From positions 1-42,744 of the forward strand of contig NIVC01001662.1 of the NCBI GenBank assembly GCA_002269645.1: DNA of 42,744 nucleotides, in the 5' to 3' direction. The notes beneath the pieces are model-generated. The model did not search any database. It worked only from the letters and a program-made list of their open reading frames with translations, and had not been told where the DNA came from. The position numbers and the translations under genes are program-made. This DNA comes from Macrostomum lignano (Eukaryota). Of this stretch, positions 10,572 to 36,629 are shown piece by piece (the first letter of the stretch is position 1; every line of letters begins with the position of its first letter).

Positions 10572-10740
10572 ATGGGCTATCGAGAGTTCCAGGACGGCAG
10601 CGATGAGAAAAAGCTGAGCTGGCTGGGGCGGGCGCAGTACGCCTTTGACAACCTGACCGGGATGCGGAACTCCAGGAAGCTCATCCTGCTGATTGTCTTC
10701 ATAGCGCTGTTCCTGGACAACATGCTGCTGACCACAGTTG
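10572..10740 (+). CDS. VMAT: Vesicular monoamine transporter, coding exon 1 (N-terminus, TM1)
   Basis: RNSRKLILLIVFIALFLDNMLLTTV matches VMAT [25 protein letters not shown], including the TM1 Asp; donor g|gtgagt at 10741. Confidence 0.97.
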
Positions 10741-10744
10741 GTGA

Positions 10745-11296
<552 letters not shown>

Positions 11297-11799: not shown

Positions 11800-12982
11800 A
11801 GAGACAGAAGTAGAGGAGGGAGAGAGATGGGAGAAAATATAAGAAAATGGAGATAGAGATAGAGAGAGTAGAGAGAGATGGGATAAAGAGTAACAGAGAG
11901 AGAGGGACATGGAGAGAGAGAGGGGGTCAGGGAGAGAGAGGGACAGGGAGAGGGTCAGGGAGAGGGAGGGACAGGGAGAGAGAGGGACAGGGAGAGAGAG
12001 GGGTCAGGGAGAGAGAGGGACAGGGAGAGGGTCAGGGAGAGGGAGGGACAGGGAGAGAGAGGGACAGGGAGAGAGAGGGACAGAGAGAGGGCCGGGGAGA
12101 GAAAGGGACAGGGAGAGGGAGGGACAGGGAGAGGGAGGGACAGGGAGAGAGGGGACAGGGAGAGAGAGGGCCGGGGAGAGAGGGGGACAGAGAGAGGGCC
12201 GGGGAGAGAAAGGGACAGGGAGAGGGAGGGACAGGGAGAGGGAGGGACAGGGAGAGGGAGACAGGGGAGAGAGAGGGCCGGGGAGAGAGGAGGGGACAGG
12301 GGAGAGAGAGGGCCGGGGAGAGAGGGACAGGGGAGAGGGACAGGGAGAGAGAGGGCCAGGGGAGAGAGAGGAGAGAGACAGGGAGAGAGAGGGACAGGGA
12401 GAGAGAGGGTCAGGGAGAGAGAGGGACAGGGAGAGAGAGGGTCAGGGAGAGAGAGGGACAGGGAGAGAGAGGGAGAGAGAGGGTCAGGAGAGAGACAGAG
12501 AGACAGGGAGAGAGAGGAGAGAGGGGAGAGAGAGGGACAGAGAGAGAGAGAGAGGGACAGGGAGAGGGAGGGACAGGGAGAGGAGAGGGACAGGGAGAGA
12601 GGGACAGGGGAGAGAGAGGGCCGGGGAGAGAGGGGACAGGGGAGAGGGACAGGGGAGAGAGAGGGCCGGGGAGAGAGAAGGACAGGGGAGAGAGGGTCAG
12701 GGAGAGAGAGGGTCAGGGAGAGAGAGGGACAGGGAGAGAGAGGGTCAGGGAGAGAGAGGGACAGGGAGAGAGAGGGTCAGGGAGAGAGAGAGACAGGGAG
12801 AGAGAGGGTCAGGGAGAGAGAGGGACAGGGAGAGAGAGGGTCAGGGAGAGAGAGAGACAGGGAGAGAGAGGGTCAGGGAGAGAGAGAGACAGGGAGAGAG
12901 AGGGTCAGGGAGAGAGAGGGACAGGGGAGAGAGAGGGCCGGGGAGAGAGGGTCAGGGAGAGAGAGGGTCAGGGAGAGAGAGG
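11800..12982. repeat. Purine-rich 15-16 bp repeat (GGGAGAGAGAGGGACA / GGGTCA), VMAT intron 1
   Basis: G/A-dominated tandem array; source of RE/GE-rich ORFs. Confidence 0.95.
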
Positions 12983-13639: not shown

Positions 13640-13720
13640 GTGAGCATGGCGGGGTCCTTGGGGTTGCAAATCGCTCAGAGTGCACAGCAGCACCGCAGCC
13701 ACCCTCGCCTCTGCTTTCAG

Positions 13721-13804
13721 TTTTCGCATTCGGCGAGTCCTATGGTGTCCTGTTCGTTGCCCGGGCCATTCAGGGCATCGGGTCCGCCTGTTCCAGCGTT
13801 TCAG
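13721..13804 (+). CDS. VMAT: VMAT exon 3 (TM4)
   Basis: ctgctttcag acceptor; [28 protein letters not shown]; donor g|gtgagg. Confidence 0.97.
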
Positions 13805-13984
13805 GTGAGGGCGTCATTTGTCTAGGAAACCCAACTATTATACCTGTAAGCCTCACTGTCGATGGTATTTGAGAAGCTTTGCCAAAATACGAGGATTTAA
13901 ATGTCCCCTAAGCCAATTGAAAGGCATCAGAATCTGCAGTTTATTATCTTACAAAAAGACTCATTGTCAAGCTAATAACAACCC

Positions 13985-14530
13985 ACCCACCTCATCCCAG
14001 CCACCCACCTCCCTCCAGCCACCCACTTCACTCCAGTCCCCTATCTCACTCCAACTACCTCTCACTCCAGCCACCCACCTCACTCCAACCACCCACCTCA
14101 CCCCAGCCCCCCCACCTCACTCCAGCCACCTACCTCACCCCAGCCCCCCACCTCACTCCAGTCCTCCATCTCACTCCAACCACCCCCTCACTCCAGCTAC
14201 CCACCTCACTCCAGTCCTCCATCTCACTCCAACCACCCCCTCACTCCAGCTACCCACCTCACTCCAGTCACTTACCTCACTACCGTCACCCATCTCACTC
14301 CAGTCATCCACCTCACTACCGTCACCCACCTCACCCAGTCCCCCATCTCACTCCACCCCACCTCACTTCAGCCCCGACACCTCACTCCAGCCCCCCACAT
14401 CACTCCAGTCCTCCATCTCACTCTCGTCACCCACCTCAATACCGTCACGCACCTCAATACCGTCACCCACCTCACTCCACCCCCACCTCATTCCAGCCCC
14501 CACCTCACTCCAGTCACCCACCCACCCCAC
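13985..14530. repeat. C-rich degenerate about 18-bp repeat (CCACCCACCTCACTCCAG), VMAT intron 3
   Basis: Recurrent CACCTCACTCC core. Confidence 0.9.
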
Positions 14531-14578
14531 TCCGCTCCGTCAGTATTAATGCTATTAATGATCTGTTGAACCCGCAAG

Positions 14579-14671
14579 GCATGGGCATGGTGGCAGCCAT
14601 CTACACGGAGGACGGGGAGCGAGGCCGCGCCCTCGGCATCGCGCTGAGCGGCTTGGCATTCGGAGTCATGG
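14579..14671 (+). CDS. VMAT: VMAT alternative exon 4A (93 nt, phase 1-1)
   Basis: cccgcaag acceptor, g|gtgcat donor; GMGMVAAIYTEDGERGRALGIALSGLAFGVM aligns without gaps to human VMAT2 G203-L233; not in the ORF track. Confidence 0.88.
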
Positions 14672-14942
14672 GTGCATTGAATGCTGGGACAGAATCCCGC
14701 CTTCCTCCAAAATCTTCTGTTTAAAGCACAAGAGTCTTACATTTTTATTTCGTTTCAGTTTCAAAGCACTTAAAGCATTTTATCTGCTGGATTGAACTTG
14801 ATTTTCAGCATTATTCTTCAATTTGCCCTTGAACCTCGATTTTAGTAGGCAACTGTCTTTTTCGTTTTTATTTATTTGCTCTGACCGTCGTTAAAAAAAC
14901 TCAAGAGGCTTTTTCCTGACACGACCATCAAACCCTCACCAG

Positions 14943-15035
14943 GACTGGGCATGCTGGCCACTCAGTACCCGGACGACAAGGAGAGGGGCCAGGCCATGAG
15001 CCTGGCTCTGGGCGGGCTCGCCATGGGAGTGCTGG
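14943..15035 (+). CDS. VMAT: VMAT alternative exon 4B (93 nt, phase 1-1)
   Basis: ccctcaccag acceptor, g|gtgaga donor; [31 protein letters not shown] aligns without gaps to the same segment. Confidence 0.93.
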
Positions 15036-15042
15036 GTGAGAT

Positions 15043-15402
<360 letters not shown>

Positions 15403-15762: not shown

Positions 15763-15852
15763 TCGGGCCTCCATTCGGCGGCCTGATGTACCAGTTCGTC
15801 AGCAAGGAGGCCGCCTTCCTGCTGCTGGCCGGCCTCGCTCTGCTGGACGGCG
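15763..15852 (+). CDS. VMAT: VMAT exon 5 (TM5 end, TM6)
   Basis: ccgccag acceptor; [30 protein letters not shown]; donor g|gtgagt. Confidence 0.96.
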
Positions 15853-15962: not shown

Positions 15963-16239
15963 TGCTGCAACTGCTGGTGCTGAAGCCCGGAGTCCGGCGC
16001 GAGGCGCAAGAAGGCGCCCCGCTGAAAAACTTGCTGCGCGACCCCTACATCCTGCTGGCCGCCGGCAGCATCACCTTCGGCAACATGGGCATCGCCATGC
16101 TGGAGCCGTCATTGCCTATCTGGATGAAGGACACCATGCGGGCGCAGAAGTGGGAGCAGGGGGTCGCCTTCTTGCCGTGCTCCATCTCCTACCTGATCGG
16201 CACCAACCTGTTTGGCGCGCTCGCCTTCCGGATTGGCAG
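15963..16239 (+). CDS. VMAT: VMAT exon 6 (TM7, TM8)
   Basis: tttcgtag acceptor; [32 protein letters not shown]...[19 protein letters not shown]; donor ag|gtgagg. Confidence 0.97.
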
Positions 16240-16385: not shown

Positions 16386-16600
16386 GCACCTCACTCCGCA
16401 CAGCCACCTCACTCCGCACAGCCACCTCACTCCGCACAGCCACCTCACTCCGCACAGCCACCTCACTCCGCACAGCCACCTCACTCCGCACAGCCACCTC
16501 ACTCCGCACAGCCACCTCACTCCGCACAGCCACCCCACTCCGCACAGCCACCTCACTCCGCACAGCCACCTCACTCCGCACAGCCACCTCACTCCGCCCA
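16386..16600. repeat. 18-bp minisatellite (CACCTCACTCCGCACAGC), about 12 copies
   Basis: Near-perfect array; shares CACCTCACTCC core with 13985-14530. Confidence 0.97.
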
Positions 16601-16623
16601 GCCTGATCCAACCTCTATTTCAG

Positions 16624-16675
16624 ATGGCTGAGCGCCGGTCTCGGCATGGTCATCATGGGCGTCTGCTTAATAATT
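16624..16675 (+). CDS. VMAT: VMAT exon 7 (TM9)
   Basis: ctatttcag acceptor; RWLSAGLGMVIMGVCLII; donor gtgagt; phase 2 to 0 fits neighbours. Confidence 0.95.
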
Positions 16676-16792: not shown

Positions 16793-16976
16793 ATCCCGTT
16801 CGCTAATTCCTTGGGCCACTTGGTGGTGCCAAACTTCGGCCTGGGCTTCGCCATCGGCATGGTGGACTCCTCAATGATGCCGCTCATGGGCTACCTGGTC
16901 GACCTGCGCCACGTCTCCGTCTATGGCAGCGTCTACGCGATCGCCGACATCGCCTTCTGCCTCGGCTTTGCGGTCG
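16793..16976 (+). CDS. VMAT: VMAT exon 8 (TM10, TM11)
   Basis: [44 protein letters not shown] nearly identical to VMATs, with both conserved Asp. Confidence 0.98.
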
Positions 16977-17224: not shown

Positions 17225-17358
17225 GCCCGGCTCTGAGCGGCAGCATCGTCAAGATGATGGGGTTCCGCTGGATGATGTGGTCCATCGCCATCATCGCATT
17301 CATCTACGCCCCGCTGCACTACTTCCTCAGGGACCCGCCGGCACGCATGGAGGATCGC
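17225..17358 (+). CDS. VMAT: VMAT exon 9 (TM12)
   Basis: atcaccag acceptor; GPALSGSIVKMMGFRWMMWSIAIIAFIYAPLHYFLRDPPARMEDR; donor gtaaga. Confidence 0.96.
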
Positions 17359-17449: not shown

Positions 17450-18255
17450 GCTGGGGTGGTTCTCCCCAATGTACACAGCCGGCAGGGCTGGGGTGGTTCT
17501 CCCCAATGTACACAGGCAGCAGGGCTGGGGTGGGGTGGTTCTCCCCAATGTACACAGCCAGCAGGGCTGGGGTGGTTCTCCCCAAAGTACACAGCTAGCA
17601 GGGCTGGGGTGGTTCTCCCCAATGTACACAGCCAAGTACACAGGCACTGCAGGGCTGGGGTGGTTCTCCCCAATGTACACAGCCGGCAGGGCTGGGGTGG
17701 TTCTCCCCAATGTACGCAAGTACACAGCAGGGCTGGGGTGGTTCTCCCCAATGTACGCAGCCGGCAGGGCTGGGGTGGTTCTCCCCAATGTACACAGCCG
17801 GCAGGGCTGGGGTGGTTCTCCCCAATGTACACAGCCGGCAGGGCTGGGGTGGTTCTCCCCAATGTACACAGCCGGCAGGGTGGGGTGGTTCTCCCCAATG
17901 TACACAGCCGGCAGGGCTGGGGTGGTTCTCCCCAATGTACACAGCCGGCAGGGCTGGGGTGGTTCTCCCCAATGTACGCAGCCAGCAGGGCTGGGGTGGT
18001 TCTCCCCTATCTACACAGCCGGCAGGGCTGGGGTGGTTCTCCCCAATGTACACAGCCGGCAGGGCTGGGGTGGTTCTCCCCAATGTACACAGGCAGCAGG
18101 GCTGGGGTGGGGTGGTTCTCCCCAATGTACACAGCCGGCAGGGCTGGGGTGGTTCTCCCCAATGTACACAGGCAGCAGGGCTGGGGTGGTTGTCCCCAAT
18201 GTACACAGGCAGCAGGGCTGGAGTGGGGTGGTTCTCCCCTATGTACACAGCCAGC
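17450..18255. repeat. 37-bp minisatellite (GGGCTGGGGTGGTTCTCCCCAATGTACACAGCCGGCA), about 20 copies
   Basis: Fills most of the last VMAT intron and ends about 10 nt before the acceptor. Confidence 0.97.
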
Positions 18256-18267
18256 AAAAACCCGCAG

Positions 18268-18477
18268 GGCCTGGTGATGGGGGGCCAGAAGCCCGCCCAG
18301 TACCAGACGCACAACATCGACAACAAGGTGCCGCCGCCGGTGCCGCCGCCGCCGGTGCTGTCCGGCGGAAACGCTTTCTCCGCCGAGGCGGACCAGCAGT
18401 TCCCAGTGGAGTGGGAGAAATGCGAACCCGGCCCCGTGCCCGCCACTGGCAGCACTCAATTTCCGCAGTACAGGTGA
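18268..18477 (+). CDS. VMAT: VMAT terminal exon (cytoplasmic Pro-rich tail)
   Basis: cccgcag acceptor, phase 0; GLVMGGQKPAQYQ...VPPPVPPPPVL...FPQYR*; exon sum with one exon 4 is 1818 nt (605 aa + stop). Confidence 0.85.
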   Translation, partial: GLVMGGQKPAQYQTHNIDNKVPPPVPPPPVLSGGNAFSAEADQQFPVEWEKCEPGPVPATGSTQFPQYR

Positions 18478-22974: not shown

Positions 22975-23215
22975 GTGCGAGTGGGTGACAGGAGTAGGTC
23001 AGTGACAGGAGTAGGTCAGTAAAAGGAGTAGGTCAGTGACAAGAATAGGTCAGTGACAAGAGTAGGTCAGTGACAAGAGTAGGTCAGTGACAGGAGTAGG
23101 TCAGTGACAAGAGTGGGTCAGTAAAAGGAGTAGGTCAGTGACAAGAATAGGTCGGTGACAGGAGTAGGTCAGTGACATTGTACCAGCTGGCAGGAGTAGG
23201 TCAGTGACATTGTAC
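22975..23215. repeat. 17-bp minisatellite (AGTAGGTCAGTGACAGG)
   Basis: About 12 copies in the intron. Confidence 0.93.
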
Positions 23216-23237
23216 CAGCTGGAAGGTTGCGACTCAC

Positions 23238-23344
23238 CTTGAAGGCCTCCCACATGTCGGCATCCTCGGTGTGGCAGTGAGCATTCTTCCTGTAGTATTT
23301 CTTCATCATTTTGAGGAACTCGTTGAACTCGACTGTGCCATTGC
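23238..23344 (-). CDS. Calmodulin-like protein, EF2 end and central linker exon
   Basis: tgtcttag acceptor; GNGTVEFNEFLKMMKKYYRKNAHCHTEDADMWEAFK; donor aag|gtgagt. Confidence 0.95.
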
Positions 23345-23423
23345 CTAAGACAGGGGCGGAGGAGGAGCAGCTTAGCAACACACAGCAGCAAACTGAAGCC
23401 CGAGCTTTACCCCGCAAACTCAC

Positions 23424-23567
23424 CATCGCTGTCAACATCCGCAATCATCATCTTGACCTCGTTCTCCGTGACCTTTGTGCCGAGGAATTTCAGCACCTTG
23501 TGCAGCTCGCCAGCCGTGATTCGGCCGTCGTGGTCGATGTCGAAAAAGTTGAAGGCCTCCTTCAGGG
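23424..23567 (-). CDS. Calmodulin-like protein, EF1 and EF2 start exon (144 nt, phase 1-1)
   Basis: ttttcgcgcag acceptor; LKEAFNFFDIDHDGRITAGELHKVLKFLGTKVTENEVKMMIADVDSD; same size and phase as vertebrate calmodulin exon 3. Confidence 0.95.
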
Positions 23568-23664
23568 CTGCGCGAAAAGCAAAGTTGAAAGGCGGGAAGG
23601 CCCGGTTAGCAGCGCCCATTTCCATCAGCATCTGCCTCTTTCTGTTTTTTGATACGCATTCGTC

Positions 23665-24118
23665 GCTCCCTTTATCCGCTCCCTCCTCCCTTATCCGCTC
23701 CCTCCTCCCTTATCCGCTCCCTCCTCCCTTATCCGCTCCCTCCTCCCTTATCCGCTCCCTCCTCCCTTATCCGCTCTCTCCTCCCTTATCCGCTCTCTCC
23801 TCTTTTATCCGCTCTCTCCTCCCTTATCCGCTCTCTCCTCCCTTATCCGCTCTCTCCTCCCTTATCCGCTCTCTCCTCACTTATCCGCTGTCTCCTCCCT
23901 TATCCGCTCCCTCCTCCCTTATCCGCTCCCTCCTCCCTTATCCGCTCCCTCCTCCCTTATCCGCTCTCTAATCTCTTATCCGCTCTCTCCTCCCTTATCC
24001 GCTCTCGCCTCTCTAATCCGCTCTCTCCTCCCTTATCCACTCTCTTCTCTCATCCGCTCTCTCCTCCCTTATCCGCTCTCTTCTCTCTTATCCGCTCTCT
24101 CCTCCCTTATCCGCTCCA
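23665..24118. repeat. 19-bp minisatellite (CCTCCCTTATCCGCTCYCT)
   Basis: Same family and orientation as 22465-22710. Confidence 0.95.
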
Positions 24119-35650: not shown

Positions 35651-36629
35651 TAGGTTTTTCGTTTGATTTCATAAAATTGTCATTTGATTTCGTCCATAGA
35701 AGTTGGCAGCGCGGCCATAGAGTCTATAGCAATAAAGTGCACTGTTTTCCGATTGAATTCGTAACTTTGCCACTTCATTTCGACTTGGCGCGCGGAGTGG
35801 CTCAAACACTGCCAGAGGGGGCTGGGATATCAGTGGGTGAATATCTATGGCCAAACCTCTCATAGAAATGAAAAGCCTATATGAACGTGTCCTCTTCTTG
35901 GGCAACAGTCACCTTCCTTGTATGCCTAAAAATGGCTGCATACGCGTCCATTGGAAACGACAGAAGGCATCTTGTCATTGAAGCAATGAACAGGGGTGAG
36001 AAAGTGACGGAAATAGCGCGATGGCTCAACATCAACAAACAGACAGTGTACTCCATAGTGAAGTGTACTCCATTTCTTAACGCCGCGAAGCAGGCACACA
36101 GTTGTCTCAAGGCTTCGCTTAAACGCCAGCTAGCAACACCTGAGCTTCAACAGGAACTTAGCTATCCGCCTGATGGCATCAACCTAACGCAGTGGAGACT
36201 CATGGTGCTTTTCCGCTGCGGCTACGTTGCACTAGAGGAAATTTCCGCCGCGAAGTGCCTTGCCTGGGAACGACATGTGATGCGGTTTCTGCCCCTGTGC
36301 ATCAATGAGCAGCAGATAATGTGAAATTTGTAGCTTGTTGCAGCGAACGAGCATTAACTTTGGCGGACATAACTGATTTCACTGTTGAACTGCCTACTTC
36401 CTCATGTGACTTAAATACACAGCTTTCTGTTTTTAACAGTTCTTTCTGTACTGGACAAGTGCATTGACTTTTCTGTTGTCTTTCTACTGGGTATGACGAA
36501 ATGAAGTGGCAAAGTTATGAATTCAATCGGAAAACAGCGCACTTTATTGCCATAGACTCTATGGCCGCGCTGCCAACTTCTATGGACGAAATCAAATGGC
36601 TATTTTAAGAAATCAAACGAAAAATCCTA
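35651..36629 (+). mobile_element. Non-autonomous Tc1/mariner-type DNA transposon (979 bp)
   Basis: About 133-bp terminal inverted repeats (35651-35782 and 36497-36629, about 7 differences by eye), TA on both flanks, internal HTH ORF. Confidence 0.9.
35932..36324 (+). CDS. Truncated transposase: N-terminal helix-turn-helix, catalytic core absent (130 aa)
   Basis: DRRHLVIEAMNRGEKVTEIARWLNINKQTVYSIVK has the Tc1-type HTH pattern; no DDE/D triad region. Confidence 0.65.
   Translation: MAAYASIGNDRRHLVIEAMNRGEKVTEIARWLNINKQTVYSIVKCTPFLNAAKQAHSCLKASLKRQLATPELQQELSYPPDGINLTQWRLMVLFRCGYVALEEISAAKCLAWERHVMRFLPLCINEQQIM

Follow-up and report, generated by a model that had tools for sequence, protein, structure and literature searches.

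Can a single flatworm gene supply two vesicular monoamine transporters that differ in the membrane core? The vesicular monoamine transporter (VMAT, SLC18A) gene of Macrostomum lignano raises this question through two neighboring 93-nt exons that encode alternative versions of one 31-residue segment, and that an initial annotation of the DNA had taken for a tandem duplication spliced in a mutually exclusive manner. Our reading of the locus, to which we give a probability of roughly 60%, is that the upstream copy (exon 4A) is a used exon that would substitute for the downstream copy (exon 4B).

The gene lies on the plus strand of contig NIVC01001662.1 (M. lignano, GCA_002269645.1), and the entire contig, 42,744 nucleotides in length, is the window analyzed here. 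Counting both exon 4 alternatives, the gene has 11 exons, and all introns in our rebuilt model are GT-AG. The reading frame is open with either 4A or 4B from the ATG at 10572 to the stop codon at 18475-18477, and the product containing 4B is identical to the annotated 605-aa protein P0001 (BOX15_Mlig020917g1). The exons, together with the intron that separates the two alternatives, are as follows.

10572..10740, plus strand: exon 1, ATG to TM1, with D49/N50 corresponding to human D33/N34; same as in P0001
13115..13639, plus strand: exon 2, large lumenal loop, TM2 and TM3
13721..13804, plus strand: exon 3, TM4, with R246 corresponding to human R189; donor common to both alternative exons
14579..14671, plus strand: exon 4A, 93 nt, phase 1-1, AAG acceptor, GTGCAT donor; peptide GMGMVAAIYTEDGERGRALGIALSGLAFGVM; in no public model
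14672..14942, plus strand: intron between 4A and 4B, 271 nt, GC 0.38, unlike the other flanks
14943..15035, plus strand: exon 4B, 93 nt, phase 1-1, CAG acceptor, GTGAGA donor; 31-residue peptide; in the RNA-seq-derived annotation
15763..15852, plus strand: exon 5, VGPPFGG (second half of the TM5 antiporter motif) and TM6; acceptor common to 4A and 4B
15963..16239, plus strand: exon 6
16624..16675, plus strand: exon 7
16793..16976, plus strand: exon 8, with D455 and D482 corresponding to human D399 and D426
17225..17358, plus strand: exon 9
18268..18477, plus strand: exon 10, C-terminal tail and stop codon

Judged by its sequence, the gene product is a bona fide VMAT, and monoamine transport is predicted. 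The top matches in protein searches were VMATs annotated in many phyla, at 53-69% identity with a best E value of 1e-186, and among solved structures the cryo-EM chains of human VMAT2 scored E = 1e-170 compared to 1e-99 for VAChT. The protein matches Pfam MFS_1 (E = 2.4e-46), and MFS motif C (G..GLA.GV.VGPPFGG) straddles the junction between exons 4 and 5. Residues D49, K195, R246, E368, D455, and D482, which align to human D33, K138, R189, E312, D399, and D426, are invariant in a 54-sequence alignment, as are Y474 and Y478, which align to the gate tyrosines Y418 and Y422. The second intron (13640-13720) is 81 nt long, in frame, and free of stop codons, and two UniProt/WormBase-type predictions (P0122 and P0123) keep it, placing 27 extra residues inside TM3/TM4. 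The three VMAT gene copies, g1 to g3, are about 99% identical with introns included, which fits the recent genome duplication in M. lignano; the g3 model is truncated at its N terminus (463 aa) and has two residue differences in the C-terminal tail.

Tandem arrays fill almost every long intron of the gene; they include the following.

10745-11296: (GTCT)138
11896-12982: 16-mer purine array, 69 copies
13983..14533, plus strand: C-rich 18-nt minisatellite CCACCCACCTCACTCCAG, about 30 copies, in intron 3; ends 46 nt upstream of 4A
15039..15401, plus strand: (AGAT)n microsatellite, about 91 copies; starts 4 nt past the 4B donor
16387-16603: 18-mer CACCTCACTCCGCACAGC, 12 copies
17450-18256: 37-mer, 21 copies

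Two of these, the C-rich 18-mer arrays, have a common core (CACCTCACTCC), and the acceptors of 4A and exon 7 follow 20-46 nt past the ends of the two arrays. Downstream of VMAT and convergent with it is a minus-strand gene for an EF-hand calcium-binding protein at about 23100-23710 (Pfam EF-hand_7, E = 1e-10); the paralogous contig NIVC01002640.1 has an AIF-1/EF-hand gene at the equivalent position. A plus-strand open reading frame at 35872-36321 encodes a homeodomain-like helix-turn-helix (HTH_23/HTH_28) and is probably a transposase remnant.

On re-reading, the exon coordinates, the 93-nt lengths, the 1-1 phase, the AG/GT sites, the 271-nt spacing, and both peptides of the initial annotation all proved correct, and the strong DNA divergence it had described between the copies amounts to 61 identical positions out of 93 (66%), with 17 of 31 amino acids identical. 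Each exon is preceded by AG and followed by GT, and each on its own matches VMAT by tblastn with an E value of about 1e-9. The local alignment of 4A with 4B scores 32, compared to 10.8 +/- 2.0 for shuffled sequences, none of which reached 32 in 200 attempts. This likeness ends exactly at the splice sites; in the 150 nt on either side of the two exons, the copies show no similarity. Two further contigs, NIVC01002469.1 and NIVC01002640.1, which contain the gene copies g2 and g3, carry the same 4A/4B arrangement with identical exons, and their comparison shows 7 differences in 1350 nt, all of them intronic. An alternative acceptor for 4A at 14543 was rejected, as it brings in an in-frame TGA. Derivation of 4A from a VMAT paralogue was also rejected: no second M. 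lignano VMAT was present among the top matches, and nothing in the databases was closer to 4A than generic VMAT exons.

How old is this duplication, and has 4A been maintained as coding sequence? The 32 nucleotide differences between 4A and 4B fall 14/3/15 at codon positions 1, 2, and 3, with 28 of 31 second positions conserved compared to 16 or 17 of 31 at first and third positions. Run between the copies, a Nei-Gojobori comparison gave a dN of 0.37 and a dS of 0.79, and 6 of the 10 shared four-fold sites differ, a level near saturation. Along with the loss of all similarity in the flanks, this divergence bears out the initial proposal that the duplication is old. Third-position GC stands at 0.87 for each copy and for the coding sequence as a whole, compared to a GC content of 0.38-0.45 in the introns, yet 15 of 31 third positions differ between the copies, and 4A has acquired neither a stop codon nor an indel.

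Conservation across the family was scored on 18 columns conserved at 90% or more among 79 distinct segments from 241 homologues, with M. lignano left out. Exon 4A keeps 16 of these columns, and its two departures (D213E and L233M) both have counterparts in other family members; 17 are kept by 4B, whose single departure, M204L, is shared with vertebrate VMAT1. Neutral drift was simulated from the inferred ancestor, and the test was that a stop-free sequence keep at least 16 of the 18 columns. With 16 substitutions on 4A this outcome had a probability of 0.02 (0.0007 jointly with the observed GC3), and with 24 substitutions it had a probability of 0.001. The claim that both copies have been under selection is thus upheld, for the past, by the codon-position pattern, GC3, the conserved residues, the neutral simulations, and the restriction of homology to the exons.

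The two copies have not changed equally. Approximately 7 derived residues can be assigned to 4A and 3 to 4B, with 4 ambiguous, and at the protein level 4A evolved about twice as fast as 4B. Most of the changes in 4A are conservative (L to V, T to A, D to E, M/F to L, M to F, and L to M), and each copy keeps its own share of ancestral flatworm-type states: T212, R219, and S226 in 4A, compared to L207, T209, K215, M230, and L233 in 4B. The family profile score of 4A is 60 bits, below the family minimum of 89, and at L207, K215, and M221, as well as at position 230 in a 55-sequence set, 4A carries residues unseen in the family. By these measures, 4A evolved as coding sequence, faster than 4B and not neutrally, and the pattern is that of coding-type purifying selection acting on both copies in their past history. 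With the three genomic copies about 99% identical, there is no power to address present-day selection on 4A, and a very recent loss of 4A use may be compatible with these tests, which speak to history.

Outside M. lignano, the segment is encoded once. Genomes of the flatworms Fasciola gigantica and Hymenolepis diminuta and of the annelid Capitella teleta each have one 93-nt exon with the same borders, between the equivalents of exons 3 and 5, and short genomic open reading frames of many animals contain the same isolated exon. Wherever the segment could be located, it occurs once in all 241 homologous proteins (79 distinct segment sequences), and a complete second copy is present in none of them. 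No isoforms differing in the exon 4 segment were found among VMAT cluster members of ten other species, and a metagenome scan returned seven VMAT-like loci, of which none resembled Macrostomum or contained the segment twice. One protein, P0033 of Popillia japonica, repeats part of the segment (…ERGNAMGGSSCSSVSGMGML…), likely through an annotation or assembly artifact. The statement in the initial annotation that SLC18 proteins have this segment once therefore agrees with 241 proteins and three other genomes. As to its suggestion to look for the two copies in related genomes, the second copy is absent from the two neodermatan flatworms and the annelid compared here. Judged by this distribution, the 93-nt exon is an ancient fixed module, and its duplication appears specific to the lineage leading to Macrostomum, where, from the divergence of the copies, it is much older than the recent M. 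lignano genome duplication.

Which part of the transporter would be exchanged? Alignment to the solved VMAT2 places the exon 4 segment at human residues 203-233, a stretch that takes in the end of TM4 on the cytosolic side, the DDxERG loop, and TM5 as far as the first half of the antiporter motif, in agreement with the earlier assignment of the segment to the end of TM4, a cytosolic loop, and most of TM5. In the structure of VMAT2 with tetrabenazine, R217 together with Y418 makes up the outer cytosolic gate, M221 and Y422 form the inner gate, M204 helps fill the gate, and V232 lines the ligand pocket, with the V232L difference in TM5 contributing to the contrasting tetrabenazine response of VMAT1 and VMAT2 (PMC10959523). 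Both R217 and V232 are kept in 4A and in 4B. The two gate methionines are reciprocal: 4A has M204 and L221, while 4B has L204 and M221. Leucine at 221 occurs in none of 79 family sequences. Leucine in place of M204 (GLGM…), the state of 4B, is also found in VMAT1 of vertebrates, in a rotifer, and in some animal sequences from the environment (the GLGM… sequences came from metagenome contigs L007, L011, and L012 and from proteins P0214, P0263, and P0310), and this recurrence indicates that the M204 gate position is not strictly invariant. Further differences lie at positions 207, 215, 226, 230, and 233, and in total the two products differ at 14 of 31 residues. On this basis the 4A and 4B isoforms would differ in cytosolic gating or kinetics and not in the charges that coordinate protons and substrate.

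The transcript-based annotation speaks for 4B. With strong splice sites and an RNA-seq-based annotation behind it, 4B is transcript supported and is the major form. At least four public M. lignano models are available, all without 4A; three GenBank models and one UniProt model use 4B, and a second UniProt prediction, P0123, skips both 4A and 4B and also retains intron 2. Current M. lignano annotations thus miss exon 4A. Behind the GenBank annotation is a genome-guided RNA-seq assembly in which only isoforms reaching at least 0.75 of the major one were kept (PMC5730564), and since such a pipeline dropped minor isoforms, the fact that 4A is not annotated weighs little as evidence. Protein searches with 4A-carrying queries (full-length, 99 aa, and 230 aa) returned only the annotated 4B cluster from Macrostomum, exact look-up of five hypothetical products with 4A or with 4A plus 4B gave no match in the collection, and HMMER with the 4A peptide against 1.84 billion representatives gave no match above 71% identity, the matches being ordinary VMAT exons only. 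As the searched collections are without Macrostomum transcript fragments of either isoform, the missing 4A is uninformative rather than negative. The 4A acceptor, AAG, is the only one of the gene's ten acceptors that is not YAG, and together with the GTGCAT donor it fits a weak, regulated exon.

If 4A is spliced, would it replace 4B? Since 93 is a multiple of 3, inclusion of both exons (636 aa) and skipping of both (574 aa) would each stay in frame, and the reading frame does not enforce exclusivity. Among frame shift with nonsense-mediated decay, an intron too short to splice (271 nt here), and U2/U12 incompatibility, none provides a mechanism; all splice sites are U2-type, and all donors are GT. 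Docking/selector RNA pairing gave no signal either, with intron-intron duplexes within the range of shuffled sequences and inverted repeats at chance level, and Rfam had no match in the window. The argument for exclusivity comes from the protein: 4A keeps the residues of a slot that is single in every homologue, and this makes sense only if 4A replaces 4B. From this we infer an exclusive choice between 4A and 4B. That one gene would make two transporters with different cores, as the initial annotation proposed, is by the same reasoning a well-founded inference.

Several other explanations have to be weighed against substitution of 4B by 4A. An assembly artifact or chance resemblance as the source of the second copy is scarcely credible. 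Repeats abound in the contig, and collapsed or duplicated regions are common in M. lignano assemblies, but three independent contigs share the two-exon arrangement along with its unique spacer sequence, a finding that excludes an artifact of one contig, which the initial annotation had named as a concern. At 66% identity, the copies cannot be mis-joined alleles, and chance is opposed by the VMAT match of each exon and by an exon-exon score above all 200 shuffles. It is also improbable that 4A is a nonexclusive cassette, co-included with 4B or skipped together with it, whose products would probably be nonfunctional or regulatory and would not add a second working transporter. The in-frame 636-aa and 574-aa products, the failure to detect a mechanism of exclusivity, and the double skip in P0123 are consistent with a cassette, but P0123 is weak evidence, since it is a predicted gene in which intron 2 is retained as well. 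A 4A that served as a mere extra helix would be under no selection for the invariant residues of TM4, the loop, and TM5, yet these are kept, and a complete second segment occurs in none of the 241 homologues in which it was locatable.

We regard it as unlikely, though deserving of serious consideration, that 4A is a relic, either formerly functional or a lucky survivor, which is now unspliced and leaves 4B as the only transporter made. Its absence from every public model, its weak AAG acceptor and GTGCAT donor, its 7 derived residues compared to 3 in 4B, its lowest score against the family profile, its never-seen residues at L207, K215, and M221 (and at 230 in the 55-sequence set), and the lack of the duplication outside this lineage all point in this direction. 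The annotation pipeline, however, discarded minor isoforms, and neutral decay fits poorly with 28 of 31 conserved second positions and a GC3 of 0.87 in the midst of AT-richer intron. Nor does decay suit an exon that keeps 16 of 18 conserved residues and intact AG/GT sites, lacks stops and indels, and has homology ending at the exon borders; only a very recent silencing would fit.

Under the preferred reading, in which 4A is a used exon substituting for 4B, an ancient 93-nt exon would have been duplicated in tandem long ago on the lineage to Macrostomum, after which both copies would have been kept as coding sequence. Substitution splicing would then join exon 3 to either 4A or 4B, and either of these to exon 5, yielding two transporters of 605 residues each, with 14 of 31 residues different within one structural module. 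The 4B protein would be the major form and the 4A protein a minor or cell-type-restricted form, and the two would differ in gating or kinetics by way of the cytosolic-gate module. One may go further and propose that a flatworm with a single VMAT swaps a 31-residue gate module by mutually exclusive splicing, allowing the vesicles of its different aminergic cell types to be loaded by transporters distinct in kinetics or pharmacology, an extension we offer tentatively and would rate at somewhat less than an even chance.

Exon pairs of this kind have precedents. In NKCC2 (SLC12A1), the A, B, and F versions of exon 4 encode variants of a transmembrane helix plus the adjacent loop and confer different ion affinities. 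Like 4A and 4B, the exons of NKCC2, the 5a/5b exons of vertebrate SCN genes, and exons 13A-D of Caenorhabditis elegans mrp-1 are homologous, equal in length, and of the same phase, and they supply one transmembrane module. The M. lignano pair differs from this class in that its exclusivity and expression are putative, and in that the event apparently belongs to one flatworm lineage and is not ancient. With that difference, 4A and 4B are probably a lineage-restricted, tandem-duplicated substitution exon pair of a well-known class. Within the SLC18 family, vertebrate VMAT1 and VMAT2 (SLC18A1 and SLC18A2) resemble the two M. lignano forms as monoamine transporters differing in this segment among other sites, a way of diversifying the function of one core, and VMAT1 begins its exon 4 segment with GLGM, as 4B does. 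VMAT1 and VMAT2, however, arose by whole-gene duplication and have separate promoters, whereas M. lignano would swap a 31-residue module within one gene.

Known invertebrate VMAT isoforms differ at the C terminus. Drosophila Vmat-A and Vmat-B resemble the proposed M. lignano case in that several proteins come from one invertebrate VMAT gene, but what sets those two apart is the cytosolic trafficking domain at the C terminus and not the membrane core. In isoforms X2 and X3 of Lineus longissimus (P0012 and P0013), inserts follow the equivalent of exon 6 (…AHKIG…) and do not involve exon 4. According to the main text of a human survey, homologous exon substitution is enriched in ion channels and transporters and is convergent across phyla; SLC18 does not appear in that main text (PMC9741552). 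The main text of a C. elegans survey, which does not include cat-1 or unc-17, describes mrp-1 exons 13A-D as 156 nt long, a multiple of 3, and still mutually exclusive, a precedent for exclusive exons of this type in a transporter (PMC4165533). Our literature search found no report of homologous exon substitution in any SLC18 gene, in agreement with the initial annotation, which knew of no such case.

If M. lignano does swap the gate module between cell types by mutually exclusive splicing, no alternative membrane core would have been described before in any SLC18 transporter, and nature would have run an experiment on M204 and M221, the two methionines of the gate. Should 4A prove unused, the locus would instead illustrate how an exon copy can be preserved for a long time. 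If 4A is used, VMAT would become one more of the transporters and channels with a membrane core tuned by homologous exon substitution, and M. lignano would offer a matched pair of transporters differing only around the cytosolic gate, usable for structure-function studies of VMAT gating. Exon-level diversification in a flatworm would then parallel the duplication that gave vertebrates VMAT1 and VMAT2, and 4A would serve to mark subtypes of aminergic neurons in an animal used as a model of regeneration.
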